A stretch of 64,000 nt of DNA from Sphaerodactylus townsendi. Taxonomy: Eukaryota. Under the pieces are notes generated by a model. It saw only the letters and a list, made by a program, of their open reading frames with translations, ran no database searches and had not been told where the DNA came from. The first letter of the stretch is position 1, and every line of letters begins with the position of its first letter. Below, piece by piece: positions 1 to 48,633 of the stretch. The position numbers and the translations under genes are program-made. The DNA lies in NCBI RefSeq assembly GCF_021028975.2, contig NC_059436.1:3100001-3164000 (forward strand), given 5' to 3'.

Positions 1-137
1 CACCCAGCAGGAAGGTAGAAGTGCAGAAACACATCTGGTTTACCAGATAAGCCTCTGCCACTCAGGTGGAGGAGTGCGGGATCAAACCCAGTTCTCCAGT
101 TTAGAATCCACCTGCTCTTAACCACTACACCAAGCTG
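1..137 (-). mobile_element. tRNA-derived squamate SINE (Squam3-like), partial
   Basis: Reverse complement of the head of the copy at 11041. Confidence 0.8.
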
Positions 138-857
138 CGTAGTAGTCTCCATTCTTGTTGAGACTGTGGGCACTCTTGGATTCTGAGGACAGATTATGTA
201 GCACCATCACAAAATGACTGCCATGGAGGCTGGGACCAGTTACAAATATTGGCTGTTTCCAAGCCAAGCACTCTCTTGTGTTTGAGGTGACTGTTTCCAA
301 TGAGGTGATTGTTTCCAATGCAGCAATACTCATTTGGCTGTGGTTTTTTTTTTTTTTTTGGTGATCTGCTCCTTGCAATCTGCTAATATTTGTCTAGATG
401 TTTTTACCCCATGTTTCCAAACCCATCTTCTTACCCATAAATTAAAACCAGCATCACTCCCTTCCAATTGTTTGGGTTCATATCCCTGGTTCACACAATG
501 TACCATTGATTATCTACTGCATAGGTTGGCTTTACAATTTAATGATGATATTTGCACGCCTGTGTAAGCGTATTAACATTACAATCGTATTCTTGGTCTG
601 ATGCCATTGAATCCATGCAAAACAATGAACTAGAAAATCCATACATGATTTCTGCTGTGGCATTTTTTTCTAGTACAAGAATTATTCTTAAGCTGCAGCC
701 AACTTTAATAAGGGCCTCTAATAATCCTGTTAGAGCTGCTGGGTTGTGGAATATATTACCACAATAGCCATAGTCCGTAGACATGAAAAATGGAGATTAA
801 CTTAGATCTTTACTTTTAAACATGAAATAAATATAACATCAAAGCTTATGTGGCAAG

Positions 858-1358
858 TAGGCTTGATCAATACCCTAGAAATTTGGTAAAGTTTGGATTC
901 AGATTTATTCGGGCCTAAAATTATCTGTATGCCCGAATAAGACAAATAACATAAATTTGGATATACCCGAAAAATTGGAGTCTGTCTGATTTTTAAAATA
1001 TTTTTGGTGTTTTTTTTTTTTTTGCATTTTGGTAGCCCCCATCTCCTGTTAACTCCCATTGGAAACAATGGGGGATGGGGCACCCAATTTGGGGGTCCAT
1101 AACTTTGGCCCCCCTTAACCAAACTTCACCAAACTCAGGTGGTATCATCAGGACAGTCTCCAGATGATATCCCGAAATTATGGTGCTGCTAGCTTTAAAA
1201 ATGTGCCCCTCTGCAGGCTGAAATGTGAAAAATACCAAAAAAGCCCAAATGCCTTGCATTCGGATTCACAAATATTCGGGCAGGACATATTCAACCAATT
1301 TAGTCCCGAATTTGCCGAGATTTGCCCGGTATTTGTTGCACCCAAATCTCCAAGCCTA
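858..1358. mobile_element. Non-autonomous hAT-type DNA transposon
   Basis: TIR taggcttg/caagccta; 8-bp TSD gtggcaag/atggcaag; internal module shared with 57985-58225. Confidence 0.7.
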
Positions 1359-1627
1359 ATGGCAAGCCATCTGAGTAAAGGATAGATAGGACCTTTCTTT
1401 CAACAATGTTTGAGTTATATGAGAGTGAACCTGCTGCAGGAATGCAAATAGAGATTGATGTTAGCTCGTGCCAGTACCAAAAACACTGATTGTCCCCTCT
1501 TCCCCAGAGACATTTGCAGAGACCATTTCCCTGCTCTACAGGCTGATCTCCTTCTATTGTCAGTTAAAGAAAATCTCAATTACTCTGTTCAAAGGCCAGT
1601 CAGGGTAGGAAGTATAGAACTGTACTG

Positions 1628-1921
1628 TGTCTCACAAAAAGATGTTAGTAGACTGGATATTCCTCCACCACAGACCTCAACATGCCAGATCTTATTTGTT
1701 GTAGAATTCTCCACTTGGGTTCTAGTGCCTACCTAGCCTGCTTCCCCCCATCTGTTTGAAAGTTTGATGGTATCAAAGGACCATGTTCAGTAATGCTAAA
1801 AATAATGGTTTTGACAAAGCCAGTGCATAAAAATGAACAATAATTCACATATTCGTTTAGGACTATATTCTAATGTGGAAGCATACAATTTTCTCAACTG
1901 CTGCACTTCAAACAGAGTATA
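1628..1921 (+). repeat. Diverged ~300-bp direct repeat, copy 1 (copy 2 at 5602-5950)
   Basis: Colinear shared blocks, e.g. aaaaagatgttag, ttgttgtagaattctc, cctacctagcc, aataatggttttgacaaag, gaagcatacaattttctc. Confidence 0.85.
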
Positions 1922-3366
1922 TATAGTTATGGCTGAGGACTTTGTATATGCTCTTCAAAGTTCACTCACCACCAGACACCCCATCCCCTCCATTTTTAAG
2001 CAGATGGTTATGCACCTATTAGAGCTGGATGAGATAATAGTGGGATGTATCTGTTATCTATTTGTTGATCATTGGTTCATTTTAAATTATATGCTGGGAT
2101 CTTATATGTTATATTTTTTCTGCTGCTTGTTGACTGCCCTGGACTCTCCTTGGGGGCAGGGTAGGATATAAAATAATATAAATACACCCCCCACACGCCC
2201 AATGGTCTTGCTGTATGTAAGGCAGCTCCGTGTGTTTATATGACATTCAGGGTTCTTTCTCTATGTTGGGGTTCCTGTTATTCTTTAGGGTGGGGTAATG
2301 TAAATGTGCAGGGTAGGAATTCATTCAATAAACATCCACCAAGATGTCTGACTCTGTAGCTGAAATCAAGCAGATTGGCTGGCATGAAATCATAATATAT
2401 ATTAGCAAGATGTGATCCAGCCAGTGGGGTTATTGAGTATCAGGCTGGAATCTGGGAGGTGCAGGTTTTGAAGCCTGACTCTGCTATGGAAGCGCTTTGG
2501 TTGACCTTGGGGCAGTCGTGCTCTCCCTCAGCCTAACTGACCTCTACATAGTTGTTGAAAGATGGTGAGGATGATGGTGTTAAGCCACTTTGGGACCCTG
2601 TTGGGGATAAAAACGGTATAATTACTTGAATGTAAGTGAGCCGGCAGTGATTGTTGCGGGAGGAGAATGCTAGAGAGCATGCTAGAGAGTGTGAAAATGG
2701 GCAGAGGGTACAGAAACCTCCTCCAGATGCCGGGGAAGGGTTCTTCTGATTCTTCAGCTTATGCCTCACACGCTGTTTGGGGTGGGGGTGGAGGAGTCAC
2801 ATTTCCAGCTTTACTGCAAAAAAATGCAACTAGCAGCATCAGAGATGAGCGGTGTCTCAAAGGGCAAATGGATTGCCTGTGCTTGTCTGACGTGACTTTC
2901 AATGAGTCTGTCAGCAGCTTGCTTTGACCTTCTCTTCCAAGGTGTGTCAGATGAGCGCACTGCTGGATGGCTGGGCGGGAGGAGTTTTTCTGTTCTGAGG
3001 CCCAGTGTGCTCTTCCTTGTGATCTTGGATGTTGTGCGAATGTTTGGGTCTGTTGTGGCAAACTCCCAAGGCTCCTTTGCTGCTCACGAGTGGCAGGGAT
3101 CATTTTGCAGGGCTACGGACTATTGCTGCGAGCAGCCTTATGCCTCTGCTAGCAAAGGCTCCCCACCTAGGGATCGGAGCAAAAAATAGCATGCTCCGAG
3201 GGGGAGGAGGCGCTAGGAAGAGGCACGTTCTCTGGATGCTCTATTGCCCGTTGCAGTGCCAGAGGACAAAAATAGCCTCCCGTGTAATTATTGCTGAGAT
3301 ACCAGTTTACCATTTCAAAGAAAGGACTCGCATTCATTTGGTTTGGCAGCAAGGGTGTTAACACAC

Positions 3367-3493
3367 ATGAAAATACACAAGCAAATCGGTGTCCTGCGGA
3401 AGATGAAATGCTTCCCTTGTCCGTTCTCAAACACAATTAAATCCGCTCAGTCCAACACCAGTGCCTTGATGTCTGCTTGTTTCTTTGACCAAG
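3367..3493 (+). CDS. PPP2R2A: Candidate alternative first coding exon of PPP2R2A (B-beta2-like N-terminus; in-frame ATGs at 3367 and 3403)
   Basis: Open frame MKIHKQIGVLRKMKCFPCPFSNTIKSAQSNTSALMSACFFDQ plus one G, then donor AAG|GTATGG (GT at 3494). Phase 1 joins exon 3 (G+CA GAT = A-D-IIST). In-frame stop upstream at 3295. MKCF start resembles the recalled PPP2R2B B-beta2 N-terminus. Confidence 0.7.
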
Positions 3494-5601
3494 GTATGGG
3501 AATGCGCTAATTTTAACGGTGAGTTCTTTGTTTTCCAATGTTTGCCTGGTTGCTTGGTTCTTGCCCGCTTCATTTTTATGTTTACGCAAAATTGCATTGA
3601 GTTGGCACTGTATTCGCAGTCATTAACAAAACAACCTTCGGTTAGCCTTGCATATATATTTCCTTTCTGAGGAACCAGCTGAAATCTCCGTCAAGGAGAA
3701 GCAGATTCCCTTTGGGACTTCTTTTATAAAGAACCTAAGTTTTTCCTGTGTGTTACTTAGCTGTGGCATAAAGGTTTTTTAAGCAAAAAAATTAATTGAA
3801 CCACATTTTTTTTAAATTGTCAGGGTTCCAGCAAAAAGAAAATGGTGTAAAGAGAAGCATGCTAATTTGTAAATTGAGGGTGTGGGGGTGCTAACTTGGG
3901 AGTTGTGGCTGATTTTGTAAATAATAAAGGAAATTGCATGTGCCTGTAAACTGCTTAAAAGTGCATACAAATCTTGAAGGTGGACATGGCATATTGAGCC
4001 CAAGGTTTGCAGGTTGAAGTGAATAATAGTGTTGAAGACTTAAGATATGCTCACAAATAGCTTTTTTGCCCCTGAGCAGAACATCAGAAGTGTCTGCAAG
4101 TGTTTAAGACTAAGTAGGTTACCTGCAAGTTCATGCTGCTTTTAAAAAATGTCTAGTTATGTGATGATGCATAAAATATGCATTTCTAATCTTCACTGAC
4201 TCAGATCTCCAGGTCAAATAAGCATTTTGGGTTGCTGAGGTGGTTTGTGTGTGTGTTTGTGCACTACAAGCATCTCCCCTCCCCAGTAAATCAGCATTAC
4301 AGAATCATACTATCTGCATTACTTTCCAAAGCCAATTCCTGTTCCTTTACAGTGAAATGCAAAGTGTCAGCTCTACATTGCAGCTTTTCCCCTCCTCCCC
4401 ACCCAAATTGGCTCAGCTCTTCCAATGCAGACAATTGCATAGCTCTGGGCTTCCAAGCTAGTTTTTTTATTGCATTCCCGGGTAGGTAGGACTTAAAAGG
4501 GTATAGTTTTATCTGTTTGCCAGCAGTTTGCAGCAGCCCCATGTAAGCTTGTTTTAAAGTTAACCTTTTAAAAAATTTGTTGTAAAGGCCATCACTTTGA
4601 GTGACTCTTAGTTTTCTGTATAGCTCTATTATATTTGGCATATCAGTTGGTACTCCTATTCCTGTTATCAGCTATATAGCTATTTCTTACACCTTGTGAC
4701 TGAACATGTGGTACCACTTAGTCTAGGAAAGGCAGAACCCTTTCCTAGTGCTGCTCTTTTCTCCTTTTAAAAAAATCTGCCAGTGCTGGGGGTGGGGTTG
4801 GAGAATTAGAAACTCTTTCCTACCTGTATATTAGAATTTAAAACTTCTGAGATCTTGTTCCAAATGTAGGAACATTTGCTGGTGGCAGGCTTGTGTGCAA
4901 ACATTTGATAAGAGGAGTCTGTGAGTCAGGAGGGTCCCACCCACTGTTGGTCAGCTGTTGTCCTGTCCCCTACCGGGGAGTCTTCCCAGGCCTCATACTG
5001 GGCAATGGAAGAGTTAAATGCACCCTGTTCTTCTCTTCTCCTGGCTAGGTGGCTCCAGCTATGAGCCCTCTAGCTTGTATTCTCCTTGGACTTTGGAGAA
5101 GCCTCCCATATCTAAAGGGATGTTGTGTATCCTTCCTGCCATTCTTCTGATTGACCCTTCTTAATTGCCCTCCCTCCGCTCCTGCTCTGACCCTCCCCAG
5201 TAATCACTTCAGGATGAGGAACCCATGGGCCTCCCCCCACCCCCATCAACCCGTGTCTGGCCAAGCTTGCCCTGATTTTGTCAGCTCCTGCCTCCTGGAA
5301 GAAGCTTTCTAGTGCAAGCTCAGCATGGCCACCACTACTTCCCCTTCAGGAGGAGTGGGGTCCATTTCTCCAGTCTCCAGACTTCCCTGCCCAGAATCTT
5401 CTTAAGATCTGTGGCTCAGCCGCTGGGTTGCTTTCCAGGCTCCATCAGTGTCAGATTCTCCCAACATAACTCCCCAACCTGACCCATCATTGGCTTCCTC
5501 ATGATGGGCAAATGAGTCATGGTTCAGAGCCCCGCCTGTGCTTGCTGCTCTGCTCCAGGTAGCTCCCATCCGTTCTGGCAGGGTTGAAGACAACTATAGT
5601 C

Positions 5602-5950
5602 TGTCTCAGAAAAAGATGTTAGAGGGTTGTATATTTCTCCACCATAGAACTCAACACGCTGGACTTCTTTGTTGTAGAATTCTCTGCCTGGGTTCTAGTT
5701 CCTACCTAGCCCTGTTCCCCCTGTCCATTTGAAAGTAAAAATACAGTGAACTATAAATGCTCTTGATCAAAGTACCATGTTCAATAATACACAAAATAAT
5801 GGTTTTGACAAAGGCAGTGTGTAAAAACGAATGGTAATTCTCATATTCAAGACTATATTTGGGGCTATATTCTAATGCTGAAGCATACAATTTTCTCGAC
5901 TGCTGTACTTCAACTGACTGTACTGACATTTTTTTCTTGGACAGAGTATA
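5602..5950 (+). repeat. Diverged ~300-bp direct repeat, copy 2
   Basis: Same colinear blocks as 1628-1921. Confidence 0.85.
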
Positions 5951-6169
5951 GAAAAAGTCTGAGGCTGCAGTTGAACATGGACATGCCTCATGGTAATAGT
6001 GCAGTCCTAAATAGATCTGCAGCCCTCTAAATCCAGTGAAGCCACTGGATGTGGAGAAGTGAAATTTGTTTAGGATTGCACCATGAGTTTTTTTTAACTC
6101 TCACTGAGTTATGATAGTGAGACAATATTGGGTTTCAAACTAGAATGTATAATTGATACTATTCACTCA

Positions 6170-6786
6170 ACCTGCATTGGCTTCCAGTTGAGTTTCAAAT
6201 CATCTTCAAGGTATGGGTGTTGACCTTTAAGGCCTTACGCGGCCTGGGACCCTCGTACCTTCGGGACTGCATTACCCCATATGTCTCTACAATTTGCTGG
6301 TGGTTCCTGGCCCCTCAATGATGCAACTGGCCTCCACTCGGGCCAGGGCCTTTTCAGCCCTGGCCCCTGCCTGGTGGAACACTCTCCCTCCAGCTGTCCG
6401 GGCCCTGCGGGACCTTGGTGAATTCCGCAGGGCCTGTAAGACTGAGTTGTTCCGCCGGGCTTTTGGAGTGTCCAGTTGCTGAGAGTGCCCCCCCCTTTTA
6501 TTCCTCCGGTCTGGAGTTCCCATTGTCATCTATGGGACCCACTTTTCTGTTTTGCTTCCCCCCTCTCTGGGAGGGTTTTAATTGAGGTTACTGCGTGACA
6601 CCATCTTTGTTAATCTTATCGCTGTGTTTTAATTTAATTTTAATCTTATTGCTATGCTTAATTTAATTTTAATGGGGTTGTTTGTATGGGTTGTTGTACA
6701 CTGTGTAGAGGAAGTTATGTTGTACACCACTCAAAGCCCTCCGGGGGTAGAGCGGTATATAAAACCCATAAATAAATAATAAATAA
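6170..6786 (+). mobile_element. 5'-truncated L2/CR1-group LINE 3' end
   Basis: Encodes LHWLPVEFQIIFKV...LGPSYLRD and RAFSALAPAWWNTLP...FRRACKTELFRRAF, typical of the L2 ORF2 C-terminus; (TAAA)n tail. Confidence 0.85.
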
Positions 6787-7606
6787 GGAGATTCCTGGGA
6801 GTGCTACTTGGTGGAACAAGGAAACATTTCAGATCCAAGAATATTCGTTTGATCATGCCAAACAATGGTTTGCTCTAGTTATAGGTTATACCTTCATAAG
6901 AGCAATGGTTCATTATCCTCTTCCATACTGTGGCCAGCCAGTATGGAACAGGCCTATAAACTGCTCAACAGGCCTATAAACAGCCTTTCTTTTATGTTGT
7001 CTCCCAGCACTGCTATTAAGAGGGTTACTGCTTTTTTAATATGGTGGTCCGTTTAGTCATCATGGCTGTTAATCATTGATGGGAACTATTCTCTATAAAT
7101 TTCCCTAGTCTCTTTTTTAATGCATACTAAAATAGTGGCTGCCACTACGACTACGGGCAACGAATCCCATAAGTTAATTGTTCTTAGTGAAGGACTACTT
7201 TCTTTTGGTGGCCACAGTCTTCTAATTGTTCTACCCAGCAACTTCACTGAGTGTCTGAAAGTTCATGTATTATATAAAAAAGAGAAAGAAGTTATCTTAG
7301 TCTTATCTACTTTCTCCACTGCCTTTGCAATTTTGCACACATCTGTCCCGTTCCCTGTTAGCAACTTTTTCCTTAATACAAAAAGCCTCAGACTCCTTTC
7401 CCTTTCCTCATAGTAAAGGTGTTAGTAAAGCCATGTTAGTTGTCATTTTTTTCTTCCATCTTTTACTGCTCTACAGTATCTTTTTAAATATTCAGCAACC
7501 AAAACCACGCTTAGTGTGGCTTATTGTAATGAAAAGATTGGTGTTCTGATTTTCATGAAAAAATGTGCACCATAATATTAATGTACATTTCCTTTTTATT
7601 ACACAG

Positions 7607-7704
7607 CAGATATAATTTCTACAGTAGAATTTAATCATTCTGGAGAATTGCTAGCAACTGGAGACAAGGGTGGCAGAGTGGTCATCTTTCAACAAGAGCA
7701 GGAG
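7607..7704 (+). CDS. PPP2R2A: PP2A B55-alpha coding exon 3 ([33 protein letters not shown])
   Basis: Translation matches B55-alpha; acceptor acacag|cag and donor GAG|gtgagt; 98 bp. Confidence 0.97.
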
Positions 7705-7860
7705 GTGAGTTTTGTGTTGATGTTCTGTGAGAAGTGGGGTTCAGTGGTCGCAAAATGTCCCAGATTCAGTTTCTAGCATCTCAATTTCAAAGGATCAGGG
7801 AGCATGTAATGTGAAGGACCTCTGTGTAAGACTCTGGAGAAGTGCCTTTTCTCACTAGAC

Positions 7861-18079: not shown

Positions 18080-18245
18080 AACAAAACACAGTCTCACAGC
18101 AGAGGAGAATACAATGTTTNNNNNNNNNNNNNNNNNNNNNNNNNNNNNNNNNNNNNNNNNNNNNNNNNNNNNNNNNNNNNNNNNNNNNNNNNNNNNNNNN
18201 NNNNNNNNNNNNNNNNNNNNNNNNNNNNNNNNNNNNNNNNNNNNN
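18080..18245 (+). CDS. PPP2R2A: PPP2R2A exon 4 (NKTQSHSRGEYNV..., remainder inside N gap; end inferred)
   Basis: Acceptor tttcag|AAC; first 13 codons match B55-alpha. Ns span 18120-18251. End inferred from the 55 aa plus 1 nt needed to reach exon 5. Confidence 0.85.
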
Positions 18246-18251
18246 NNNNNN
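18120..18251. other. Assembly gap (132 N)
   Basis: Run of N. Confidence 1.
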
Positions 18252-20894: not shown

Positions 20895-21033
20895 NNNNNN
20901 NNNNNNNNNNNNNNNNNNNNNNNNNNNNNNNNNNNNNNNNNNNNNNNNNNNNNNNNNNNNNNNNNNNNNNNNNNNNNNNNNNNNNNNNNNNNNNNNNNNN
21001 NNNNNNNNNNNNNNNNNNNNNNNNNNNNNNNNN
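20895..21033. other. Assembly gap (139 N)
   Basis: Run of N. Confidence 1.
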
Positions 21034-26809: not shown

Positions 26810-27089
26810 TGTTGTAATGACGGGCTCCTATAACAATTTCTTCAGAATGTTCGATAGGAACACTAAGCGAGACATCACTTTAGAAGCATCCCGGGAAAAC
26901 AACAAGCCCCGCACCGTTTTGAAGCCCCGGAAAGTTTGTGCGAGCGGCAAGCGGAAGAAGGACGAGATTAGCGTTGACAGTCTAGATTTCAACAAGAAGA
27001 TTCTACACACAGCCTGGCACCCCAAGGAAAACATCATTGCTGTTGCCACAACAAACAACTTGTATATATTTCAAGACAAAGTGAATTAG
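26810..27089 (+). CDS. PPP2R2A: PPP2R2A last coding exon ([17 protein letters not shown]...IFQDKVN*)
   Basis: Translation ends QDKVN-TAG, the alpha-type C-terminus; acceptor tctag|. Confidence 0.98.
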
Positions 27090-31779: not shown

Positions 31780-32640
31780 TCACCTAGGCAACGTCCGCAC
31801 TGACCAAGCACCCTTTGGAACTCGCAACCTGCTTCTCGAATGTGCGCAGGCGTGACAAACCTTTTCTTTAAAAAAAACACCCTTGGCGCGTGCGCAGTAG
31901 GTTAGCAGGAACGCTCGGCGGCGCACGCTCGGCTTGTTGGTCCGCGCGTGCGCAGTATGCGTTGGCCAGCTCAGCCCTGGGGGCGTGTGTGAGAGATGGT
32001 GGGACGTGAGTGAGACATGCGCTTTTGCCGCCACCCCGCTTCCCCCTCTCCTTTTCTCGCGGACGTGAGAGGCGTCAGGGAGGAAAAAGAGGATTAGGGG
32101 GTTAAGGGGCGGTGCCTGCGCGCCGGCGCGTGGGCGTGCCCGTTGGGCGCGTGCGTACAGGAGACCCAGGGGCGGGGCGGTGTGGGGGCGGGGCTCTTCG
32201 CGCACATAGCTCGTCTTGTTTTGGTTGTTATCCTCCCTGCTGCTGTTGCCTCCGACCGGAGAGCTCCGCGGTCGCGACAAGACGCTTCCCTCCCCGCCCC
32301 TCCCGTCGCCATGTCCTCCCCTCAGGACTCGCCTCACCACAACAATAACAACAACCCGCCGCCTGAGGGGACGCCAGCCGAGCCGGGCCTTAACAGTGAG
32401 TGGGGCTTTCTGTTTCATCCCTTTCCTACTTCTGCTGCGTACCTTTCCCTTCAGAGTATGTTACCTCATGCGAGTGAATGGGCCAAAGTTGTATTCGGAG
32501 TTCGTTAATTTTCAAGCGGCCGCGAAGGTACCCCTCCCCCTCTATTCTCAACTTAGTGCGGATTGGTCGGTAGCCGAGCCGTGCGAGATGCTATTGGCCA
32601 ATGGGTAGTGGGAGGCGGTCTTAGTTTGCTTTGCTGGGGG
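31780..32640 (+). promoter_or_regulatory. BNIP3L: BNIP3L CpG-island promoter (NRF1-like, GC-box and HRE-like motifs)
   Basis: High CpG/GC around exon 1. GCGCGTGCGCA at 31886 and 31944; GGGGCGGGG near 32168; GGACGTGAG (ACGTG core at 32004 and 32063). Confidence 0.85.
32311..32395 (+). CDS. BNIP3L: BNIP3L/NIX exon 1 (MSSPQDSPHHNNNNNPPPEGTPAEPGLN)
   Basis: gtcgccATG Kozak context; poly-N tract and GLN|S junction typical of NIX; donor gtgagt. Confidence 0.93.
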
Positions 32641-35244
32641 GGGGGGTAGAATGTTGGAGGGGGGGATTAATTAACAGATCACTTTTTATGTCTCTTTTTT
32701 GTCCCAAGTTAAATGGACTTCAGGGTGAAATGTTACAATGCAGAAATGGGAGGGTGACAGGATAACAATGGGGATCTACAGTTGGGGAATATGATTTTCC
32801 CACTCCCTCCCAAAAGGGGAAGATGGGGATTTGGGATTGGAGTTTGGACCTGGGAGTGCCCTGTGCAGAACTGGACCACTGGTTACATTTTATTTTATTT
32901 GAAAGATTAGCATTTGGTCGTTTCACTTATGATTTCTGAGATAGTATTATTTTTTTAAAAAAAAGTAAAGGGAAGGAGAATTTTTTTTTGTTTTTTTGCC
33001 TTTTTATTGTTTGAAAGATGACCAAGACGATGCATAGGTCCAATGTAAAAGGTGTCCTTGTTCACAGTCTCCGTAAAGTTTTACCAGCTGCTAATAGTTC
33101 TGTTTTGTGATTAATTGTTTCATGGCAGCTGGATTCTCTAAACGTGTACACCATCTAGGCTAGGTTTTCTGGAATTTAGAAATGGAGAATTGCTGTTTAA
33201 GTGGTTGCTAGTTTTGAAAGCATTTGAATTAGGCACGGTAGTCTTGCTAGTGCGTTGCAGGGAAAAATAAAAATGAATCCCTGAAACCTGATGCTACGGT
33301 AAAAACTTGTTTGAATGCTACGAGACTGTTTTTGCTTAAATGTTTGTATGATAGCGATTAGGCAGTAATTTGAAATAACTTGAGTGGTGTAATGGTTTGA
33401 AGCAGTGGTACAAAGCTGCGGAATGTGATTGAGTGTTCAGAAAGTAAAGATAGAAATGAGGTGGGAGATGTGTTTGTATGAGAAGGGACAATTAAATGGT
33501 CTGAAGGTTTCTGTATGAAATAGGGCAGCGTTCCTAAGCATGCTTGAAAATATGGCTCATTGAAATTGACTTCTTAGTAAGCTTGGTTAGGGTTGGGCTT
33601 CTAATAGGTTTTAATACTTAAGGCAGGAATAAGGATCTGATAGATAGCGAGAAGTATTTGAAGCAGGTAAGCAAGACTGAGTGGAATGAGAGAGGAGTGA
33701 ATAGCTGACATGTCCATCGCTTGCAGCTTCTAATATCTGGTAGGTCAACAGCTGAGATGCTTGGGAGGAGCTACAGTGTTTGAGAGTTTATCCAGTGGCT
33801 GAGCAATATTACTGACATGTACTGTTTTCTGTTGTATTAGGGTCTGTCAGCTGGTCCAGGACAGCCTTTTGTTCCCAGAATCAGTTTGGAGGAGGATCCA
33901 GATAACTCTAGTTTGCATTTTGTAACTGTGAAATGATTTTCAGTCACCTCTCATGTTTAACTAGTTTACGTGCGCTGTTGTGCTTGAAAGATATGTAATG
34001 CTTACTTTTCTCCACCCAGTTAGGCATCACCTGATGCAGTGAGACAAATATTCTGGAAACTAGCTCTCAAAATATTTATCCATATAATGAGGCCACTATA
34101 CTTAGGAGATTATTTCACAGTGAAGCACTTGAAGAATGCTGTGTTGTGTTCTTTGAGTTTCCAGGCTAAATCAACTGCTATATTTTCTACACCAATATGA
34201 ACATTACTGTACAATGGCTAAGAAGAACATCATATTTGACTGACAGTCTGTGGGTGCTTAATTGATAGGAACTTTACCTCAACAGGAAGTATTAACTGCT
34301 TTTAAAAGGCGCAGACTGGCAAAGTTTTGTATTTCTAGCTTAAGAAATTTTTAGCCTGTTTTTCACCCATGTAGCACTTTAAATGGCTAACAGTGATAGT
34401 GAAAAAAAGAAATTCTCACCAATGTAAGCAAACAAAACAGCCACTACCAGAAAATATACAGCAGATCCTTCAGCTGAAAAATTCTATCATACGTGGTATC
34501 TTGAAACTTAAAAGAGCAGGCACATTGCTCACCCATGCTGGAACGTCATTCACGATGTGGGAACCCTTACTGAAAATGTTCTGTGTTGAGCAGTGGCAGT
34601 TTTTATGCATTCGTTACAGGGAACAAAATGAAGACTGATTAAAGGATCAAAGTCCCTCCACATAGGTTTGTACTGGGAGAGATGATTCGTTAAGTATGTG
34701 AATCCCAAGCTACAAATGGCTTTAAAAGAACCAGCACCTTGGATTTAGAAGCAAACAGGAAAGCAGTGCTTAAAACAAACCCAGTATGTGCATAGTGGTT
34801 CAGTTCCAACATTAATCAAGATCCTGCATTATTCACCACCTGAAGTTTTCAATTTGCCTTCAAATGCAGCATCACATAGAACATATTACTATAGCTTAGC
34901 CTTGAAGTCACTATAGCATCAACATGGTTAGGACAGCGTAATCTAGATAATATCCATACTAGATAAAGTTGGGAAAAAATGTGTTTTACCCTCCAGAAAA
35001 AGAAACAACATATCCAAAGGCTTAACTGAATCATACAAAGATGAACTAATCCCCTCAGATTTGAATCACTAAGTCCTGTAGATCTGGGGGGAAAAGCAAT
35101 ACACGTGCACATATATAACAGATATAATTCAAAACCTAACCCTTGCCAACTAGCAAGATCTCTGGAATTGGTTTGTTTATTTGTACAGCCTCTTGATTAT
35201 AGCCAGCGAATGCTGCTCTAGAGCAGAGATGGATGCTTCTAGAG

Positions 35245-35891
35245 CAGGGGTCCCCAAACTACGGCCCGGGGGCCAAATGTGGCCCCCTGAAGGCATTTAT
35301 CCGGCCCGCCAGGCATGGCGGCGATGGCTCCATTCATGTGCAGTGGGGGCTCGAGGGAGGGGAGGAACCGGCCCCAACGCCTGTTGATTGCAGTTACATG
35401 ATGGCACCCCCAAATCTCCATGAATTTTCTGACCCAGAGTTGGAAACCTTACATGTGGCAACGCTTCTTCGCTCCGCCTCTTCTTCCTCTTGGCTACTCC
35501 ATGTGTTGCTCTCAGGCTTTCTGTTCCGCCTCACTCCCATTGGCATCAGCCAGGCTGGCGAATCGCTCTCTGGCTGCTAGGGAGGAAAGAACCCAGGAAG
35601 ATACCTGATCCTGGGTTAGATGGAATACTTCATTGGGAAAGTTCTGCTTTTTTTTTTACAGGGGAAGGTATTCCACAGCCTCCCCAACAATATTTGGAGC
35701 CCACCCTGTACTTGACATACTTTGGTCACTGTTCTAAAAATAGACCATGACAGAAAGGCTGAAAGGTGAAATCAAACATTTTACAATCATTTGTGCATAG
35801 GAATTTGTTCATAGTTTTTTTTTAGTCCGGCCCTCCAACAGTCTGAGGGACAGTGAACTGGCCCCCTGTTTAAAAAGTTTGGGGACCCCTG
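35245..35891. mobile_element. Non-autonomous hAT (Charlie-like) element
   Basis: Perfect TIR caggggtccccaaact; perfect TSD ttctagag. Confidence 0.9.
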
Positions 35892-37079
35892 TTCTAGAGG
35901 CTTGAGGAAATGTATAGTTGGGTGTCTTCTGCCTATTGATGACACTGTGCTGCAAAACTTTAGATAATCTCATTCTATGTGGTCTTGCACAGAGATTAAA
36001 AAATGCAGGCAATGATAATGAATTTTGCAGATTAAGTCCCACACTACTGGCTTAGACTCATTGTGATGACTTTCTGTATGTAGTTGGTGAAGATAGGCTT
36101 AAATCTTTCTTGCACTTTTAAATTCCTACACACTATTGCAGATAACACAATAAAAGTGTGATCAGCTGTGTTGAAGCTTTCTGAAAGATCATGCTGAATA
36201 ATGATAATGTGCAGAAGTGTAGAATACATCAGGGAAACTTAGATAAATGTCTTTACAAAGCTCCTATAGCGGTGACAATGTAAACATATATTTCAGTGAA
36301 ACATATTTAGTTAAAGTTGTACATGAGAGAGCCATAGGTCTACCAAATCATACGAAGCCTGTATCTTGTTACTGGAGTCCAGTGCAAGCAACCAAGATGG
36401 ATAAAAATTGACTAGGAAATTTGAACTGAATAAAGTCTACATTGGTAATCTTTATTAATCATAAATAATTAAAAGCAATATTAAAAGCCACTTGTACATT
36501 AAAAAAGAAACATGGAAGAGGTCTGATTTTGTAGGATAAGGCTTAGTATTAAAAATGACATCAAGCTCACAAATTGAATGTATTTATTATGAAGGTTCTT
36601 AGTGGATTCAGGGACAAGAACACTAGGATCCAGAACTCATCATTTTGCTTTTATCATTTTGCTTGTTTCCTTTACTCCTGGTTTAAGCTCTCCTTAACAA
36701 GTGTCAACCATAGGCAGGTAAATAAGCCTTCTATTTAAAAAGTGGAGTTGAAAACTTTGCTTTTAGTCCACTCTAGATGCGGCACAGGACACTCTCTGGA
36801 AGCCTGTTGAGCAGAACACACTACTCAGCATATAAAGACAAAAGAGCTAATAAAATATGTGAACTGACATGGAAGAAGTTGAATGAAATTAGTCGAGTTT
36901 AATTCATAATGTTGTTCAGTTGTTCTCAGAATAAATGAAGAAATACTTTTTGTTGTCTTTGCATGTTTTCCTCCAGCTTATCTGACTTTGGTGTTGCTGC
37001 ATATTTCTGCAAGCAAGTGATAAACTTTATGCTAAGTTTAGTTTCAAAGTTTCTGATGTATCCTTTGACTGTTCACCAG

Positions 37080-37260
37080 GCTCCTGGGTAGAACTGCAAA
37101 TGAACGGAAATGGCAACGACAATGGCAATGCGAAAAATGGGGGGCTGGAACATGTTCCTTCTTCATCTTCCATTCATAATGGAGACATGGAGAAAATCCT
37201 TCTAGATGCTCAGCATGAATCAGGGCAGAGCAGTTCAAGGGGTAGTTCTCACTGTGACAG
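37080..37260 (+). CDS. BNIP3L: BNIP3L exon 2 ([14 protein letters not shown]...[26 protein letters not shown]), includes LIR motif WVEL
   Basis: Translation; acceptor caccag|, donor |gtaagg; WVEL at 37085-37096. Confidence 0.97.
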
Positions 37261-37535
37261 GTAAGGCCAAGCTTTGAGTTCTTTAAAGTGCGGTTGTCTT
37301 TTCTTGAATAAAGTGTTGCGAATTAAGTATTTAATTTTACACTACATTAAAATGCTGAGGGGTTTTTGTTGGTTTCTGCAGAAGATCAGAATTGATTTTC
37401 GGTGCAATCCTAAACCAAGTTACTCCATTCTAAGTCCACCGAAGTCATTGATCTTAGACTGGAGTAACACTGCTTAGGATTACCCTATTTGTCTGAATTG
37501 TTTGTGGTGTGTTGAGGATACTTTAGAGTCTAAAG

Positions 37536-37703
37536 CAGTGGTTCTCAACCTTCCTAACAGTTCCTCATGTTGTGGTGACCCCCAACCCTAACATTTATCC
37601 ATTTTACACATGGAGAATACTGATGCAGAGAGTCTTAGGTGACCCCTGTGAAAGGGTTGTTTGACCCCCAAAGGGGTCCCAACCCCCAGGTTGAGAACCA
37701 CTG
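37536..37703 (-). mobile_element. SPIN/URR1-like hAT MITE
   Basis: TIR cagtggttctcaacct; perfect TSD gtctaaag. Confidence 0.88.
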
Positions 37704-38279
37704 GTCTAAAGTTTAGACATTTAGTTGGATCCAGAAATCTTCTGCAGTATTGCAGATCATTGTCATAAAACAGAGTGGGTTGCTCTGTTAAGAAGGGGCC
37801 AAAATCACTCCAGTCAGTACATCTTTGCTGTTAAGACGGTGATTATATCCCTTTCCTCAATTCTGTCCACCAACTCACATGGCTGTTAAGCCAAGTGGAC
37901 CTTGTGACTCCAACAATCAGCTTGGAGGGCAGGGAAGGGGCATAAGTCTGCAACCTCAGTGCCTTCTACTCAGGGATCTCTGAATCCAGTTACACGAGCC
38001 TGGGATAAGGCTTTGTAAAGTTACTTAAAGATCAGCTAATTTAATGTTCTTTTCTTTAAAAATTGTAAAAAGGAGTTTTCTTGAAGCAGGTTCTTTATTT
38101 GAAAATATTAAAGGCAGCAAAACATTGTAGTAAACTAATATTTCACCTATTTATGCTCTGAAGAGGAGGGCATCTTGAAGCTTGGCTGTTCTCCCTAAAG
38201 ATTCCCAGCAGCCAAAATGTTTTGAGGACCACAGTTACCTTTTGAACAGAGACAAAAGCAGTCTCCTTCTGACTTTGAG

Positions 38280-39885
38280 TCTACAGAACCTAGGAGTTAT
38301 CATTGATTCTCAGGAAAACATGTAACCAAAAAGACCCAATTACAAGGTATATAATATTGTGTGTAGGATCAGCCCCATGTGCTCGTCTGCACTCTGGACC
38401 TCTCCAGTGATTCCTCTGTCCCTGCCTGTCAACAGTCATACAAAAAGAGGATAAGAAGTTGATCCTGACAATTTTGGTCAGGCACAGCATGATCTGGTGG
38501 ACCAGGCAGAGTCACTTGGCTCAGGGACAATCCTATATTTGGAATAATACAGTACAGTTTTTCGCAGATGCTAATTTGATCAGCTGGGGAACTTCCCTAT
38601 GAGAACAGCCAGCCCATGGTTTCTGGACAAAGGAAGAAAAGCAACTGAATGTCAATGTCTTGGAACTCAGGGCTATCAAGATGACACTTCTACACTTACA
38701 CTCAACAATCTGCAACCAGCACATTCTCGTCAGGACTGACAGCATTTCAGCTAAGGCCCATATCAACAAACGGGTGATCCAGGTCATTCCCCCTACATTG
38801 GGAAGTAAGGATTCTATTAAGGGCAGAAATGCATCTACAATCAATTTCTATAGAACACATTCAGGGATCACTCAACATGCAATTAGACTGGCTGAAAAGG
38901 TAAATCATGGTTGAGAACAAGTGGTCCTTCAAAAGGGAGACTAGCTGATCACAACAGATTTGGAATTCCAAGGGTGGATTTGTCACGTCAGCCTCCAGTC
39001 ATCTCATACCACAATTTTTAATAGGTATCGTCACCCAGGGGAAAAACTAGTGGATGCACTATGCTTCCCATGGCCACAGGGTCCACCTCTACCAGTTATG
39101 TCAAAGGCACATAAGAAGGTATACCAAAAATAGGCTCTGGTTATCTTTGTTGTCCTGTACTGGTGTCGCAGACCCTGGTTCCCATCTCTGGTGGAACTTT
39201 CAGTGCAATGGTCTTGATGTAATCCTATGAAGTCAGGACATGTTACGACAAGGTCTGGCCTGGCACCCAGAGCCAGAGGTTCCATCTGACCACATGGCTC
39301 TTTAAAAAAAGGGTTGTTGGAACACAATTATGCCCCAGAGGTGACTGAAACCATCATGGCCTCTAGGAAGCTGTCCATCCAATTCATACACAACTTTTGC
39401 AAGATAATGTCAGTACAAGCAGGTTGACTCATTAATGTGTGGTTGGGACAGATACTAGCCTGCCTTCAAGATTGGGTCTTCCAAAAATTGAAGGCATCCA
39501 CACTACTTTATCAGGTGGCGTATATAACGACCATAATTCCACAGGTAGCAGGGGTTCCGTTAATTAAACATCCTCACATGATCTTGTTCTTCAAAGGAAT
39601 GGCACAGACTGACACCCCCACCCCGATCATCCATTGTTTTCCCATCTGGAGACTCTATGTGGTGCATCTGTGCTAACCGATGTGCTAACCTTTCGAACCG
39701 CTAAGATATGGTGCAATTAAGTAGCTCCACACGAAGATTTTCTTGATGGTGGTAACTTCATCCTGAAGGGTTTCAGAGCTGGGAACTCTTTCAGCTAGGA
39801 AAGGTCTCTGTGTTTTCCACAATGATAAGGGGGTACTTTAATTGGACCCTACTTTCATGCCCAAAGTTTCCAAGATTCCATTTTA
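38280..39885 (+). mobile_element. Decayed DIRS1-like tyrosine-recombinase retrotransposon in BNIP3L intron 2 (boundaries approximate)
   Basis: Remnants in order: LGVIIDS (RT end); ADANLISWG...NVLELRAI...VRTDSISAKAHINKR (RNase H); DALCFPWP and YWCRRPWFPSL; HPHMILFFKGM; KIFLMVVTSS*RVSELGTL...FHNDKGVL*LDPTFMPKVS (recombinase). Confidence 0.8.
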
Positions 39886-41130
39886 TCATAGAGTTGGTAG
39901 ACTGCATAGAAGACTGCCTAGACCAACTGTTTATCTTTTCAGTCTGCAAAACTACATCTTTTTCAACTTTTGACCTTTCCCCCTCTTTTGATGAAAGTAA
40001 GCAAGAGGAAAATGTCTAACCTGTGTTTGCAGCGATTGTTCCCTAGATATAATCAGGACAGTTTAATCAAGTATTTGTGCAACAGGCTTGAGGGAAAGCC
40101 ATAAAGACTGTAGTTACAGCTTAGTATGACCTAGGGATAAATTCCTTCTTGATTTTGTATGTGGTGTGAAGCAGAACTCATCCATAACATTGAGTTAGCT
40201 ATCAATTCTGTGACATGCAGTATCTGTCCAAAATTTGTTTGTCATACTTCTAAATCAGAATGTGGTAGTCGAACTGCTTTTTCTATACCTCTTTCTTGTT
40301 AAGATCTTCTGAGCAAGGCATTTACATTTTATGATAATTTTGGAAATAGTTTTTCTGAAAAAGATCATACGTGGCCATGAAATTTCAAATCTGCTAACAT
40401 TATACATTTTAGTAGGGTTTATTTGAAGCTTTTTGGAAATGTCAATATTGACTTGTAAACTATTTTGGGTTAAGTAATTTGTAGGAATATGAAATGGACC
40501 CTTGTGAGGAAGTCAGAAAATACATTATGTCATTTTTTATCTCCTTTGCATCCCGCTTAATGTGCATCTGTTTAATCTAGCTCTTTTATTTCTTCACCTA
40601 ACTCAGAATTGGTTTTCTTAAACTTTTACTAAGGAGGAATGCCAGTAGACTGCCAGCCAGTAGAATTGTGTTTTTAGTTAGTTTACTTTTATACTTTTAT
40701 CCTGATAATGAAACAAAACCATCTCTTGGTGTTTTGTGCTGTTCTGCTTGCAGCAGTCACTGTCTGCGTAGCAGCCAGCCTACAACATTCCTGGGACCTT
40801 CTGATGTGATCTAATGTTTGGTTTGGCAACCTAAGAATGCAACTCTGAGCATTCTTTTCCTAGGAGTCTACCCCAATGTGTACAGTGGGACTGACTTAAG
40901 TAAATATGCATTGGTTTTGCCTATAAACCTAATATCTGCCTTCTTTTTAGCTTCTTCCTTCTATCTTAAAGTACGTACAGCTTTTGGGAGAAGTAGCTTC
41001 AGCAATTACTGAATTTCCTCACCCTTCTAAAATATTTCTCTTTTATAGTTTTTATAAAACTGTAATATACACAGTTTTATATAATCAAGTTGCTTGGTAA
41101 TAATGGTTATTTTAATCACCTTTCTCCTAG

Positions 41131-41203
41131 CCCATCTCCTCAAGAAGATGGACAGATAATGTTTGATGTGGAAATGCATACAAGTAAAGACAATAGTTCT
41201 CAG
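41131..41203 (+). CDS. BNIP3L: BNIP3L exon 3 ([24 protein letters not shown])
   Basis: Translation; acceptor tcctag|, donor |gtatgt. Confidence 0.97.
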
Positions 41204-42929
41204 GTATGTTATTTTTATTTATTTAAAAGAATTCTGTTTCAGTTAAAGATATTTGAATCTGTCCTAAATGTGAGAGTGATTGAAGTAAACGGCTGAACGG
41301 TCTTATCTGCAGAGAGCTGAAATAAGTGGTAAGCTTTTGTTTTAGTAGGTTAGCATAGTCCAGTTTAAAGGTTCTTCTACCTGTGTCCATTTGATCTTGA
41401 AAATGAAGGGTTGTGCATTTTAGAGCTTCTGAATGAATGAAGAGTCATTTTGAGTTGTATGTTTCTTTTTGAGAGATCCTTGTGCTCACATGAACTGGTC
41501 ATCTAAAAAAAAACTCACGAGTTGCCCTTTATAAGTGATGTTCATGCTGTTACCTTGTCAGTAGCTGCTTTAAATATTTTCATGCTTATGGTAGGGGGGA
41601 AATGCTGATGTTTTAGTACTAGCACATTACATTAGAAACTTTGGAGGAAACGAGAGATGTCTTTGTTTTTAAAGTGGTAATGCAAGGCCTTAGGAGCCCT
41701 GAGGTGCAAAGTGATAAGCTGCAGTACTGCAGTCAAAGCTCTGCTGACGACCTGAGTTTGATCCCGATGGAAGTCAGTTTTAGGAGCTGACTCGAGGTTG
41801 ATCTCAGGGGCCAAGTGACTGCCTGCAGCAGCATGTCCCTAGAGGCTTCCCGGCAGCGTGGGGAGACCTGAAAATTGAAAAAGCCTTTCCATCACTGAGG
41901 AGACTTAATAGACTTATGCCACCTTTTTGGTGGCATCAGTCTAAAGCCCCAGCCATGGGTGTAACAGGGCTAATGGCCAGGAGAAAACTAATGTCGGTTC
42001 TGCCCCCATCCTGTCCCCTGTACCCGGTGGCGGCAAGGGTGTGGCCACACATTGGCCGAATCGACCCTCCTCCAGGCCAGGTGCCCTGGGGAGGGCAAAT
42101 CACCAGCACCTCTTCCACAGGGCGATTCGCCCCCACCCTCTTTGGATGGGCCTGTAAGCCTTCCATCTTTCAGAGGTTGGGACCACCTCCAACCCTATCC
42201 GTCAATCCAAGACTTAAGGGTCTGTGATGCCTTCTTTCAGGAACAAGCCTCTACAGAGATTTGGCTGGTGGGAACCTAGGGCAGTCCTTTTTTGTTCTGT
42301 TTCTCTGTAATTTTGGGTTTCCTTCTCTCAGGACTTGAGAACTATTACTTCCCTTAAGACCTTCTGTAAAAGTTTTGAAACCTGTCTTTCCTCAAGGGCC
42401 TTTGATTTAGACTAGTCAATACAAAATAATGCAGTAAGGTAACAACAGGGTAAAGCAAGTATTTGAAGCTGGAATGTATGTGTTTAAATTAATCATGTAA
42501 GGTTGCTCTGAAAATTAGTGTTCAGCTTTTAAAGTATTTTACTTTTAGTGTAATGAATTGGGGGGTTGGGCTTTTGGGGGGGATTTTCAAATGGTTACAC
42601 CAGCTTAGTTTGATTACATTTTTTAGTGATCATGCCTGTTTATAAATATTTCAGTGTGTTTAAGTGATGCTTCTGTTAATCCTTGACATTTAGACACAGG
42701 TTGACCTCAGTAAGCCATGTAGATACACTCGCATCGCTTTCAAATAGATGATAAAATAATTGATGACAGTGGAGTATATTCATTTTGTTTCCCTTTCCTA
42801 TCCTTGACATTTACATCAGTAGCAAAAGTGTGTCAGAACTGTCATCATTCTTTGCTTATCTGCCTGTCAACGTAACTACAAGAAGGAATAGGACAAATGT
42901 TACAGATTGTGTCTCCTGTATATTTTTAG

Positions 42930-43033
42930 TCTGAAGAGGAAGCTGTAGAAGGAGAAAAGGAGGTGGAAGTCTTGAAGAAAAGTGCTGACTGGGTATCTGA
43001 CTGGTCAAGTCGTCCTGAAAACATTCCTCCCAA
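42930..43033 (+). CDS. BNIP3L: BNIP3L exon 4 ([35 protein letters not shown])
   Basis: Translation includes BH3-like LKKSADWV and WSSRPE; acceptor ttttag|, donor |gtgagt. Confidence 0.97.
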
Positions 43034-44269
43034 GTGAGTTGAAATTTGTTCTAATCAATATGCCTTCTCTTATAAGGATTTATATTAGATCATCAAACAT
43101 ACTTTTTGAAAAAGTATTGTTATAAAATGCACTTTTAAGACATGAGTTTTCTTTTTTAGGAAAACATCCTAAATAAGATCTATCTCATAATTGTAGGTGT
43201 TTGATAAAAGCTGATTGCAAGCAACCCTTCTTTTCCATTCTTCAGTCCTATGTATGGGCATCCACTTTCTTATTTGTCTTTTTTAGATTTACATTCATGA
43301 TTCATTTACAGATACTTTTACAAATCCATGAAACTTGGTCCATGAGTCTTAACAGTCTGAGTTACATGGTGGAAATGCTCCTTATAGAATTGCAGCAGAA
43401 CCCATTCTTTCTCTCTGTGCTGTCTGCAGGACAGCCACTGCTCTGTCTGAAACACTGCATTGTAGAAAGGCAGTTTTTTTTAGCAGAAGCCTTCCCTCAC
43501 AGCCCACTTATCCAACTACAGTGCTCCTGGTAAGTGACATCTCACCCAGTGATAGGATCCAGAGAGCACCTGGCATGAGTTTCGTCTGAGAAAGGAGGGA
43601 GACCTTATTTTCTTCAAAACTGCAGCCTGCTGTGACCCAGTCCATTCTATTCCTGAAGTTGTCTCAATCTCATGAGGCTTGCAAGAGGTCACCGGGTTCA
43701 AGGTATTAGGGATCTCAGTGAAAAGAGTTGGGAGGATAGTGCCATTGAAAAAGTGAAATTTCTCTGGATCTCATATGTGATCTGAGATGAGTGAGGCAGG
43801 GCGGGTGGCCTATGTTTGGGGGGAGATTCCTGGCTGTGTAGGAGCATGCACGGCAAGGAATTTTTTGTTCAGTGATAATATGGAATTAGTAGAAAACCGT
43901 GATGCTTGACTTGTTGTGAGCCTTTTTGCAGGGCAGTACTTGGGAAAGCATGTTTTAGCCAGACATACAGGATTTATTGTGGTTTGCCTACTTAACATTG
44001 AACATATAATGTATAAACTTTTATCTCCAAGGAGCTTAGAGTGCTAAAATACCACTGGTTTGCTGAGAGGAGCCAGATGAATAGTTTTGTTTTGAAAAGC
44101 AGCGTTCTCTTCTCAGACCTGCCTATCTTATCAGCTACAGCTGCATTGACATTTAAATGAATGGTCTTTCACTAATGCTCCACTTGCTTCCTAACCCTTA
44201 GCTTTTGGGGTGATTTTAATTATCTGAATTCAGTATCTTTTGAGTTGCCATCCATTTTGTTTTGTTCAG

Positions 44270-44419
44270 GGAGTTTCACTTCAGACATCCTAAACGAGCA
44301 GTATCTTTAAGTATGCGGAAGAGTGGAGCCATGAAGAAAGGTGGCATTTTCTCAGCTGAGTTCCTAAAGGTTTTCATACCATCTCTGTTCATATCTCATG
44401 TTTTGGCTTTGGGACTAGG
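44270..44419 (+). CDS. BNIP3L: BNIP3L exon 5 ([50 protein letters not shown])
   Basis: Translation includes the transmembrane SHxxAxxxG dimer motif; acceptor gttcag|, donor |gtaagt. Confidence 0.97.
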
Positions 44420-45314
44420 GTAAGTACCAGTACAAATATCAGTGGTTGGGTGAATGGGGATATTTCAACAGATCTTTGTGAATTAGGGAGTAAAAATCCC
44501 TTTTAATGTTTCCATGAAAAATCCAGTCAACTGTGTTGAAGGTTTGGTGAAACAATGTAATCGTGCAAGGCAGTGCTATAATTTCATACATAGTGTTCAA
44601 ATTCCAGAGTAAACACCTGGAATGATGATACCACCTAGACCGCCTGAAGGAAGGGTGAGATAAGATCAATAAAATTAGTGAAGTATAATGAAATCAAACC
44701 AGAATGGGGGGGGGGGGAGAACTGTCGCTGATATGTTTTCAGAACATGCTGTTGCTCAGCAGTATTATTCATCTCTTAATTAAAACTGTGTGTAAACAAA
44801 ATCTCAGGCATACATTGCTGATAATTAAGCAACTTGCAGACAATCTTGTGACCAGCTGGCTATCACTGCACCTTTGGGGATAATTTGACTCCTTTGAGTT
44901 GCTTTGAAAATCAGTGGTGTAATTGTACATTTTGTCTTAATAAAATTCTGAGTCTGATTATCTTTTATATATATATATCATGAATGGTGCTAATAAGGCC
45001 TTTGCATACTATCAGAAACCATGAACTGTGGACGTCAGTGGAACTTGGTTCAGACTATAGTTCCGCACTATGTAAATAAGCTGTGGTTTGTTTGCATAAT
45101 CCCCCACAACCTTTCACACAAGAGTTGTAATTAGTTGTAATCACATTTTGCTGTCATAATTGGCAAACCATGGTTTGGCCTTGCCCAGTTTACCAGGACT
45201 TAAAATTAAGAACTATCTGTGTTGGAAATGCTGATTTGTGGGTCAAGGATAAACTACTTTTATAGGTTAGTTATAATGGTAAATTGGTTTGCTGCAGGTG
45301 ACTAATTATATTAG

Positions 45315-45510
45315 TCTAATGGTTAAGAATAGCAGACTGTAATCTGGAGAACCAGGATCGAATTCCCACTCTTCCACATGAACTGTTGGGTGACCTTGAG
45401 CCAGTCACACTTCTCTCAAAACTCAGTCCACAGCGAGGCAGGCAGTGGCAAAGCACCTCTGAATGTCTCTTGTCTTGAAAGCCCTTATGGATCACCATAA
45501 GTCTTGATTT
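45315..45510 (+). mobile_element. tRNA-head SINE with Sauria/BovB-like tail
   Basis: Head similar to the 11041 SINE; tail gcagtggcaaagcacctctgaatgtctcttgtcttgaaa. Confidence 0.6.
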
Positions 45511-45728
45511 GATGGGGTGCACGCGCCGACCTGTGAGGAGAGAACTGATTGTTCAATTGAGTACTTGGCTTGTTCTAATAATGCCAGGTCATGGCATTGT
45601 GTCTGAACCATTCCCAAATACATTCTTTCTCATTGTTTGCTCTGTGTTCAGAGATGGGTTCCTAGTAGTTATACTGTTAACATGCTTTGTGTTTCTATGC
45701 TATTAACACGCTTTGTGTTTCTTTTCAG

Positions 45729-45777
45729 CATCTACATTGGAAAACGGCTGACTGCACCTTCAGCTAGCACATATTGA
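45729..45777 (+). CDS. BNIP3L: BNIP3L last coding exon (IYIGKRLTAPSASTY*)
   Basis: Translation; acceptor tttcag|. Six exons sum to 642 nt = 213 aa plus stop. Confidence 0.97.
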
Positions 45778-48295: not shown

Positions 48296-48633
48296 GTTCT
48301 GCTGCCTTCTTATTGCCATTCACTTTACGGAGGATTTGCAGAAGAGCCCCTTCACATATTAAATTTTTGATGTGTCTAAAAATGTAAAAATTAGCTTATG
48401 TGACAAATATGTGAATACACCATATAGATACACCTCAGGGAGCAATCTCATACTGCTCCTTGTTTACTCTTAATGTTCACTGCTCCATAACGTATAAAAC
48501 CCTGGTATTCTGGGTTAAAGGAATCTGAAATCCAACTTGCAGTAGAATACATTAAATTAAATATATTGCATATGCGGATTGAGTTGATACAATTTTTTAA
48601 AAAGCATCACTAAATAATGTTCTTAAAAATTCA

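Follow-up and report, generated by a model that had tools for sequence, protein, structure and literature searches.

A conserved candidate alternative first coding exon of the B-beta2 type in the PPP2R2A gene of a gecko, a snake and birds

We analysed a 64,000-nucleotide stretch of the genome of Sphaerodactylus townsendi (NC_059436.1, positions 3,100,001 to 3,164,000 of the forward strand; hereafter the window), which carries a gene for a B55-type regulatory subunit of PP2A. The last exon of this gene, ending at 27086, is 100% identical in translation to residues 355-447 of B55-alpha (PDB 3DW8_B), and the other exon translations read as B55-alpha and not as its beta, gamma or delta paralogue, which identifies the gene as PPP2R2A (B55-alpha). 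Among the regulatory subunits of PP2A, B55-alpha is the principal one in mitotic exit and in dephosphorylating tau, AKT and the pocket proteins, and it is regarded as one protein, diffuse in the cytosol. An earlier note on this DNA had proposed that a short open frame upstream of the common exons is a first exon giving the protein a mitochondria-directed N-terminus. Here we describe this frame and its conservation, which make it likely that PPP2R2A has a conserved alternative first coding exon with its coding part at positions 3403-3493, and we weigh what such an exon might do.

Anatomy of the candidate exon and its junction

The coding part of the putative exon occupies 3403-3493 on the plus strand and comprises an ATG, 30 codons in all (MKCF...Q) and the first base of an Ala codon. 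Read directly from the window, the frame opens after a TGA stop at 3295-3297, contains ATGs at 3367 and 3403 and has no further stop up to the CAA at 3490-3492. The exon ends at G3493 in a phase-1 donor (AAG|GTATGG, with GT at 3494-3495) that agrees with seven of nine consensus positions. A PPP2R2A exon common to the canonical form begins at C7607, behind the acceptor AG at 7605-7606, such that joining G to CA across the 4,113-nucleotide intron yields Ala followed by DIISTVEF. The open frame, both ATGs, the upstream stop at 3295, the donor and its phase relative to the exon at 7607 were therefore all present as the earlier note had described them, and its characterization of the 42-residue peptide from ATG 3367 as rich in Lys/Arg and Ser/Thr with a single acidic residue agrees with our counts (six Lys/Arg, seven Ser/Thr and one acidic). 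The frame is also distinctive within its surroundings: translating the full 64 kb in six frames yields MKCF a single time, and within positions 1-7600 the MKCF frame is the sole ATG-started frame of at least 20 codons that ends in a phase-1 AG|GTRNG donor.

For comparison we used five sequences, namely the window, the snake Naja naja and three birds (Logan contig L001, Bambusicola thoracicus and contig L007). The features relevant to the exon, with coordinates in the window, are as follows.

3127..3342, plus strand: moderately conserved upstream block, with 7-15 invariant columns per 30 compared with 21-25 per 30 in the exon, and no CpG island; candidate promoter or distal 5' leader.
3343..3402, plus strand: 5' leader of the putative exon, strongly conserved and indel-free in the five sequences (divergence 0.10-0.25); holds ATG 3367.
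3403..3493, plus strand: predicted alternative first exon, coding part; ATG with A at -3, frame open in the five sequences, and the start of two existing gene models.
3494..3535, plus strand: donor and conserved intronic block, with GT at 3494-3495, an in-frame TAA at 3514-3516 and a second donor-like site whose GT lies at 3519-3520.
7607..7704, plus strand: common PPP2R2A exon, (A)DIISTVEF...QQEQE, with its donor GT at 7705-7706; 87-90% identical to birds and snake.

Within the upstream block, an A-rich MEF2-like or TATA-like motif at 3266-3275 was considered and is not claimed here, as it is not conserved as a motif across species.

By this anatomy the element would be an alternative exon of the type known as B-beta2 from the paralogue PPP2R2B: it would encode the start of the protein from a position 5' of the ADIIST exon, fits that exon in phase 1 and is predicted to replace the canonical N-terminus. 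We infer that translation of a transcript that starts or enters a short way upstream would begin at the MKCF ATG (3403), and that splicing from G3493 to C7607 would swap the canonical first 26-27 residues for a tail of 30 residues. The canonical exon 2 is absent from the window and from the 10 kb upstream in the loci of three relatives (L001, Bambusicola and Naja).

An exon of this kind could be used either as a first exon or as a cassette. The claim that it is a first exon and not a cassette holds in the birds, but the CAG at 3347-3349 could serve as acceptor for splicing from exon 2 in the window and in Naja, where the exon would then work as an in-frame cassette of 144 nucleotides. Because the three birds have CAA at this position and so lack the AG, we rejected the cassette as the conserved mode.

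Conservation, gene models and coding signature

Aligning the window with the L001, Bambusicola, Naja and L007 loci by blastn recovered only the constitutive exons and one further island, whereas the introns did not align. The island starts at 3127 (birds L001 and L007), 3185 (Naja) or 3331 and ends at 3525, 3535 or 3562 depending on the relative, and its conservation maximum is the 90-nucleotide segment from ATG 3403 to the donor. Divergence in this segment was 0.11-0.18 between deep lineages and 0.033-0.044 among birds, compared with 0.12-0.15 and 0.058 for three constitutive exons, 0.15-0.25 and 0.10-0.15 for the leader (the first 68 alignment columns, 3335-3402) and 0.18-0.31 and 0.067-0.089 for the 45 nucleotides after the donor; introns could not be aligned between deep lineages and diverged by about 0.22-0.28 among birds. 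Judged by exon distances, the window is about equally far from the snake and from the birds. Across the five sequences there are no indels in 3343-3535, and the invariant elements include ATG 3403, the nine bases before it (CTGCGGAAG, with A at -3), the open frame and the donor GTATG, followed on the intronic side by the in-frame TAA at 3514-3516 and by GGTGAGTT. The conservation check suggested for the proposed exon thus came out in its favour, with the start at 3403, the frame and the phase-1 donor all kept in the snake and the three birds.

The two candidate starts put forward earlier did not fare equally. While ATG 3403 is invariant, ATG 3367 is kept in four sequences, each with C at -3, and has been lost in bird L007, where ATA takes its place and the sixth codon after it is TGA, the MKCF frame remaining intact. 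The functional start is therefore probably the second ATG. Because L007 lacks the first ATG and both existing gene models begin with MKCF, the conserved product would be the 30-residue and not the 42-residue tail.

These gene models came from protein searches. A phmmer search with the 42-residue peptide against 1.84 billion representative proteins gave a single genuine match, P0001, on the 37-kb Logan contig L001 of a bird, and one other match, P0002, which was discarded as a repetitive chance match. P0001 (159 residues, L001 10001-10480) is itself a mechanical read-through open reading frame (ORF) in which TGA is translated as Trp; read with the standard code, it has a TGA 19 codons before its first ATG, and mechanical ORF calls on vertebrate contigs in that collection can use a non-standard code. 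Searching with the exon part of P0001 led to POI31241.1 (P0003) from Bambusicola thoracicus, and searching with the first 40 residues of that protein led to KAG8141335.1 (P0004) from Naja naja. Both begin with the orthologous MKCF peptide joined directly to ADIISTVEF. The question raised earlier of whether annotations of non-mammals predict the exon can be answered accordingly: two automated annotations, in Bambusicola and Naja, already do. Over the 30 residues of the tail, the window is identical to POI31241.1 at 24 positions and to KAG8141335.1 at 20. Residues 29-218 of POI31241.1 align to residues 26-215 of B55-alpha in the PDB, where the tail is without counterpart. Both proteins are named only 'hypothetical' or 'putative' with no study attached, and in the library of papers searched there was none describing a PPP2R2A MKCF exon and none containing the tail peptides. 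A search for proteins homologous to a 55-residue ORF, covering lengths of 0.55-1.75 times the query, gave no match; the longest tail-bearing query in the protein searches had 247 residues. Scanning metagenomes with a 20-mer that is invariant recovered L007, a genuine bird contig; the other three matches (L004-L006) were bacterial, were due to chance and were discarded.

Substitution patterns carry a modest coding signature over the 30-42 codons. The ratio of nonsynonymous to synonymous substitution rates (dN/dS, NG86 method, 30 codons), a check already suggested in the earlier note, gave a mixed answer: it was low between the window and the birds (0.12-0.24), 0.46 between two birds and 0.49-0.72 in the pairs that include the snake. 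Under parsimony with four sequences and 42 codons, there were 14 synonymous and 21 nonsynonymous changes, or 11 and 9 without the snake branch, where random single substitutions would be expected to be synonymous in 19-25% of cases, depending on transition bias; against null fractions of 0.22 and 0.27, the 11:9 split has P 0.001-0.007. With five sequences, 30 codons and the snake branch again set aside, the counts were 8 and 8 (P 0.013-0.04, with 22-27% synonymous expected).

A number of observations weigh against a protein-coding exon. Over all branches and 30 codons the counts become 9 synonymous and 16 nonsynonymous (P 0.08-0.21), and the snake branch looks neutral (1:8). One shifted frame gives 13:22, almost as many 'synonymous' changes as the 14:21 of the true frame. 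The chance of the open frame surviving the approximately 35 substitutions is about 0.26. The non-coding flanks and the synonymous sites are conserved too, and part of the constraint therefore acts on the nucleotide sequence (RNA or DNA) itself, as is usual for regulated alternative exons. Both gene models are automated. POI31241.1 is partial, ending after 218 good residues, and KAG8141335.1 (Naja locus L003, 10001-37809) is visibly faulty elsewhere, with a propeller exon replaced by intron-derived residues and the HEYLRSKL... exon out of frame, such that it is reliable in its first and last parts only. A search of sequencing runs for the stretch gave four DNA-type runs from one study and no RNA run. 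Finally, a second donor-like site (ACG|GTGAGT, GT at 3519-3520) lies 25 nucleotides past the first donor, is stronger (eight of nine consensus positions) and is equally conserved.

Some of these observations would fit an exon that is real but non-productive or regulatory, that is, a 5' untranslated or 'poison' exon tuning B55-alpha output, with the frame as a by-product. The leader and the first 40 intronic nucleotides are nearly as conserved as the exon, only two synonymous changes separate three birds whose introns differ by 22-28%, and preservation of the frame is by itself not significant. An AG preceded by a T-rich tract is found at 3352-3353 in all five sequences. Use of the second donor would end the frame at the invariant TAA at 3514-3516 (the window alone has an extra TAA at 3508-3510), and together the TAA and second donor could act as a non-productive alternative 5' splice site or as an enhancer that binds U1. 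A by-product frame is nevertheless hard to reconcile with a conservation peak that falls exactly on the ATG-to-donor segment, with an invariant ATG with A at -3 and phase-1 donor, or with the synonymous excess in four of five lineages; chance is moreover a very unlikely explanation for a start identical to that of the paralogue's exon at this junction, which is proven to be coding. We consider a non-productive exon quite unlikely.

Structured RNA was rejected as an explanation. The single Rfam match was a sub-threshold chance match outside the exon, consensus folding gave a covariation term of -1.19 kcal/mol with two compensatory pairs and nothing above background, and a hairpin over the donor, with z of about -1, was likewise not above background.

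It is also conceivable that the island is a conserved intronic enhancer or promoter containing no exon, and conserved non-coding elements are common in the long introns of developmental and housekeeping genes; that the sequencing runs were of DNA type only would be in keeping with this. Such an element would require that an invariant ATG in good context, an open frame, a consensus donor in the sole fitting phase, a start identical to that of B-beta2 and a conservation maximum bounded by ATG and donor have all come together by coincidence, and we regard it as very improbable.

Relation to B-beta2 and predicted properties of the protein

B-beta2 is the mitochondria-targeted, neuron-specific alternative N-terminus of PPP2R2B. 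In that gene the alternative tail decides between cytosol and mitochondria, only B-beta1 and B-beta2 among the isoforms are conserved across vertebrates, and the B-beta2 tail binds the translocase of the outer membrane (TOM) complex under the control of a switch by phosphorylation of Ser20-22 (PMC11780858). Its N-terminus begins with MKCF, and the first 24 residues as printed (PMC2810296) agree with the sequence given in the earlier note.

The likenesses between the two exons are considerable. The B-beta2 exon provides an alternative coding start for a B55-family gene, PPP2R2B, as the exon described here is predicted to do for PPP2R2A, and both start with MKCF and have the phase that fits the same ADIIST exon. 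Both tails are short, Ser/Thr-rich and almost without acidic residues, although the PPP2R2A tail has 30 residues and that of B-beta2 has 26 (a length given in the earlier note, with the first 24 residues confirmed). Since MKCF, junction and phase are the same and a chance MKCF at that ATG is very unlikely, there is good evidence, by comparison of the two, that the exons share an ancestral exon. Beyond MKCF, the similarity fades: the global alignment score of the rest of the tail was not above that of shuffled sequences (p 0.18-0.41), and of the features earlier described as shared with B-beta2 only MKCF stands, as the NT is NI in the snake, and the S-x-C pattern lacks its Cys in the snake and the birds. 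Any such signal in the tail could have been lost as the paralogues diverged after an ancient duplication. The proposed paralogy is thus supported by start, junction and phase, but not by the remainder of the peptide.

Whether the tail also shares the function of B-beta2 is a separate matter. A B-beta2-like signal would bring PP2A with B55-alpha to the outer mitochondrial membrane through TOM and promote Drp1-dependent fission. In keeping with this, the two proteins agree in their first four residues, junction and phase, and K2 and a basic residue at 13 (K13) align ungapped with K2 and R13 of B-beta2, which, together with R6, were reportedly identified in 2005 by Dagda as the determinants of TOM binding. 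Ser and Thr are also abundant in the tail, whose one acidic residue lies close to the end, and the B-beta2 tail offers a precedent for TOM binding with a phospho-switch. Set against these, there are only two or three Lys/Arg residues in the 30-residue tail (the snake alone has Arg5), and the position of B-beta2 Arg6 is taken by a conserved Cys; the R6A substitution is said, from the work of Dagda et al. in 2005/2008, to abolish B-beta2 targeting. In place of the Ser20-22 cluster the segment is Ser/Thr-rich without a Ser triplet, and only Ser20 aligns ungapped. Amphipathicity is lower as well: by a crude measure (not TargetP or MitoFates), the maximum hydrophobic moment was 0.45 for the 30-residue tail, a value reached by 419 of 2,000 shuffles, and 0.50 for the 42-residue version, reached by 1,027 of 2,000, compared with 0.77 for B-beta2. 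With so few basic residues and a moment within the range of shuffles (21-51% of which reach these values), the tail does not look like a classical amphipathic mitochondrial presequence, and the 42-residue version, which is more basic, cannot be the conserved form because bird L007 has lost ATG 3367. The claim of a mitochondria-directed N-terminus was therefore not borne out by these comparisons; mitochondrial targeting of the tail is possible but unsupported, and we rate a TOM signal of the B-beta2 kind as unlikely.

A further possibility is that the exon is coding and its tail is not a TOM ligand but a lipid anchor, by S-acylation at Cys3 and Cys6, or a neutral spacer, its main effect being to take away the blade-closing strand and so open the propeller notch as in Ppp2r2b and Ppp2r2c. 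The tail follows a conserved pattern, MKCFxCxFS.TIKSA..N.SALM, in which K2, C3, F4, C6 and F8 are invariant in the five sequences, and the placement of Cys3 and Cys6 beside basic and aromatic residues suggests an S-acylation, lipid-anchoring or protein-binding motif. Mouse Ppp2r2a without residues 1-26 gains enrichment at the axon initial segment (PMC12675759), and it is exactly this segment that the tail would replace. S-acylation is read here from the motif alone, though, and if removal of the strand sufficed, the tail would not need to be so conserved. We hold an anchor or spacer to be possible, although on balance it is not probable.

What the predicted isoform would lose is better defined than what its tail would add. 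In the canonical protein the N-terminal segment of Ppp2r2a pairs with the C-terminus and completes a propeller blade, and this N-terminus keeps B55-alpha from being localised; mouse Ppp2r2a lacking the first 26 residues (delta-N26) or carrying the N-terminus of Ppp2r2c becomes enriched at the axon initial segment, a relocalisation attributed by its authors to an opened 'notch' in the propeller (PMC12675759). Compared with canonical B55-alpha (PDB 3DW8 chain B), the predicted isoform comes from the same gene and would share the propeller from residue ~27 onward, but would carry the MKCF tail in place of the blade-completing segment. Relative to the delta-N26 and Ppp2r2c-swap constructs, the same 26-27 residues are gone and the same notched propeller is expected; the difference is that those are laboratory constructs in mouse neurons, whereas the isoform would be natural and would have its own conserved tail. 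The most secure functional expectation for an isoform without the blade-closing strand is therefore that its localisation or binding differs from that of canonical B55-alpha.

More speculatively, and in our estimation doubtfully, the ancestral vertebrate B55 gene may have had two alternative first exons, the MKCF type surviving in both PPP2R2A and PPP2R2B, at least in sauropsids, and giving an open-notch B55-alpha isoform that a Cys-rich tail directs to a membrane compartment (the mitochondrial outer membrane, the axon initial segment or another) and that is absent from the picture drawn from mammals. More generally, a natural, conserved isoform exchanging exactly this segment would amount to a built-in switch for the localisation of B55-alpha and would place the MKCF exon before the alpha/beta duplication; at least two genome annotations already include the isoform, where it has gone unremarked.

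Surroundings of the gene in the window

On the same strand, 3' of PPP2R2A, lies BNIP3L (NIX) at 32140-45780 (+), with exon-like frames at approximately 32.2-32.4 kb, 37100-37264, approximately 41.1-41.2 kb, 44262-44423 and 45637-45777; in the Naja locus, too, this gene (Pfam BNIP3) is the neighbour. Runs of N occur at 18120-18251 and 20895-21033, the first of which cuts a PPP2R2A coding exon starting near 18070. An interspersed repeat is present in several copies, among them minus-strand frames at 802-1259 and 57771-58142, which share a peptide of the GCPI.HCFQWEL type. A G+C-rich stretch at 48600-49270, past BNIP3L and before the window ends, has long frames on both strands (up to 215 codons) and could be either a repeat or a CpG-island promoter belonging to the gene that follows.

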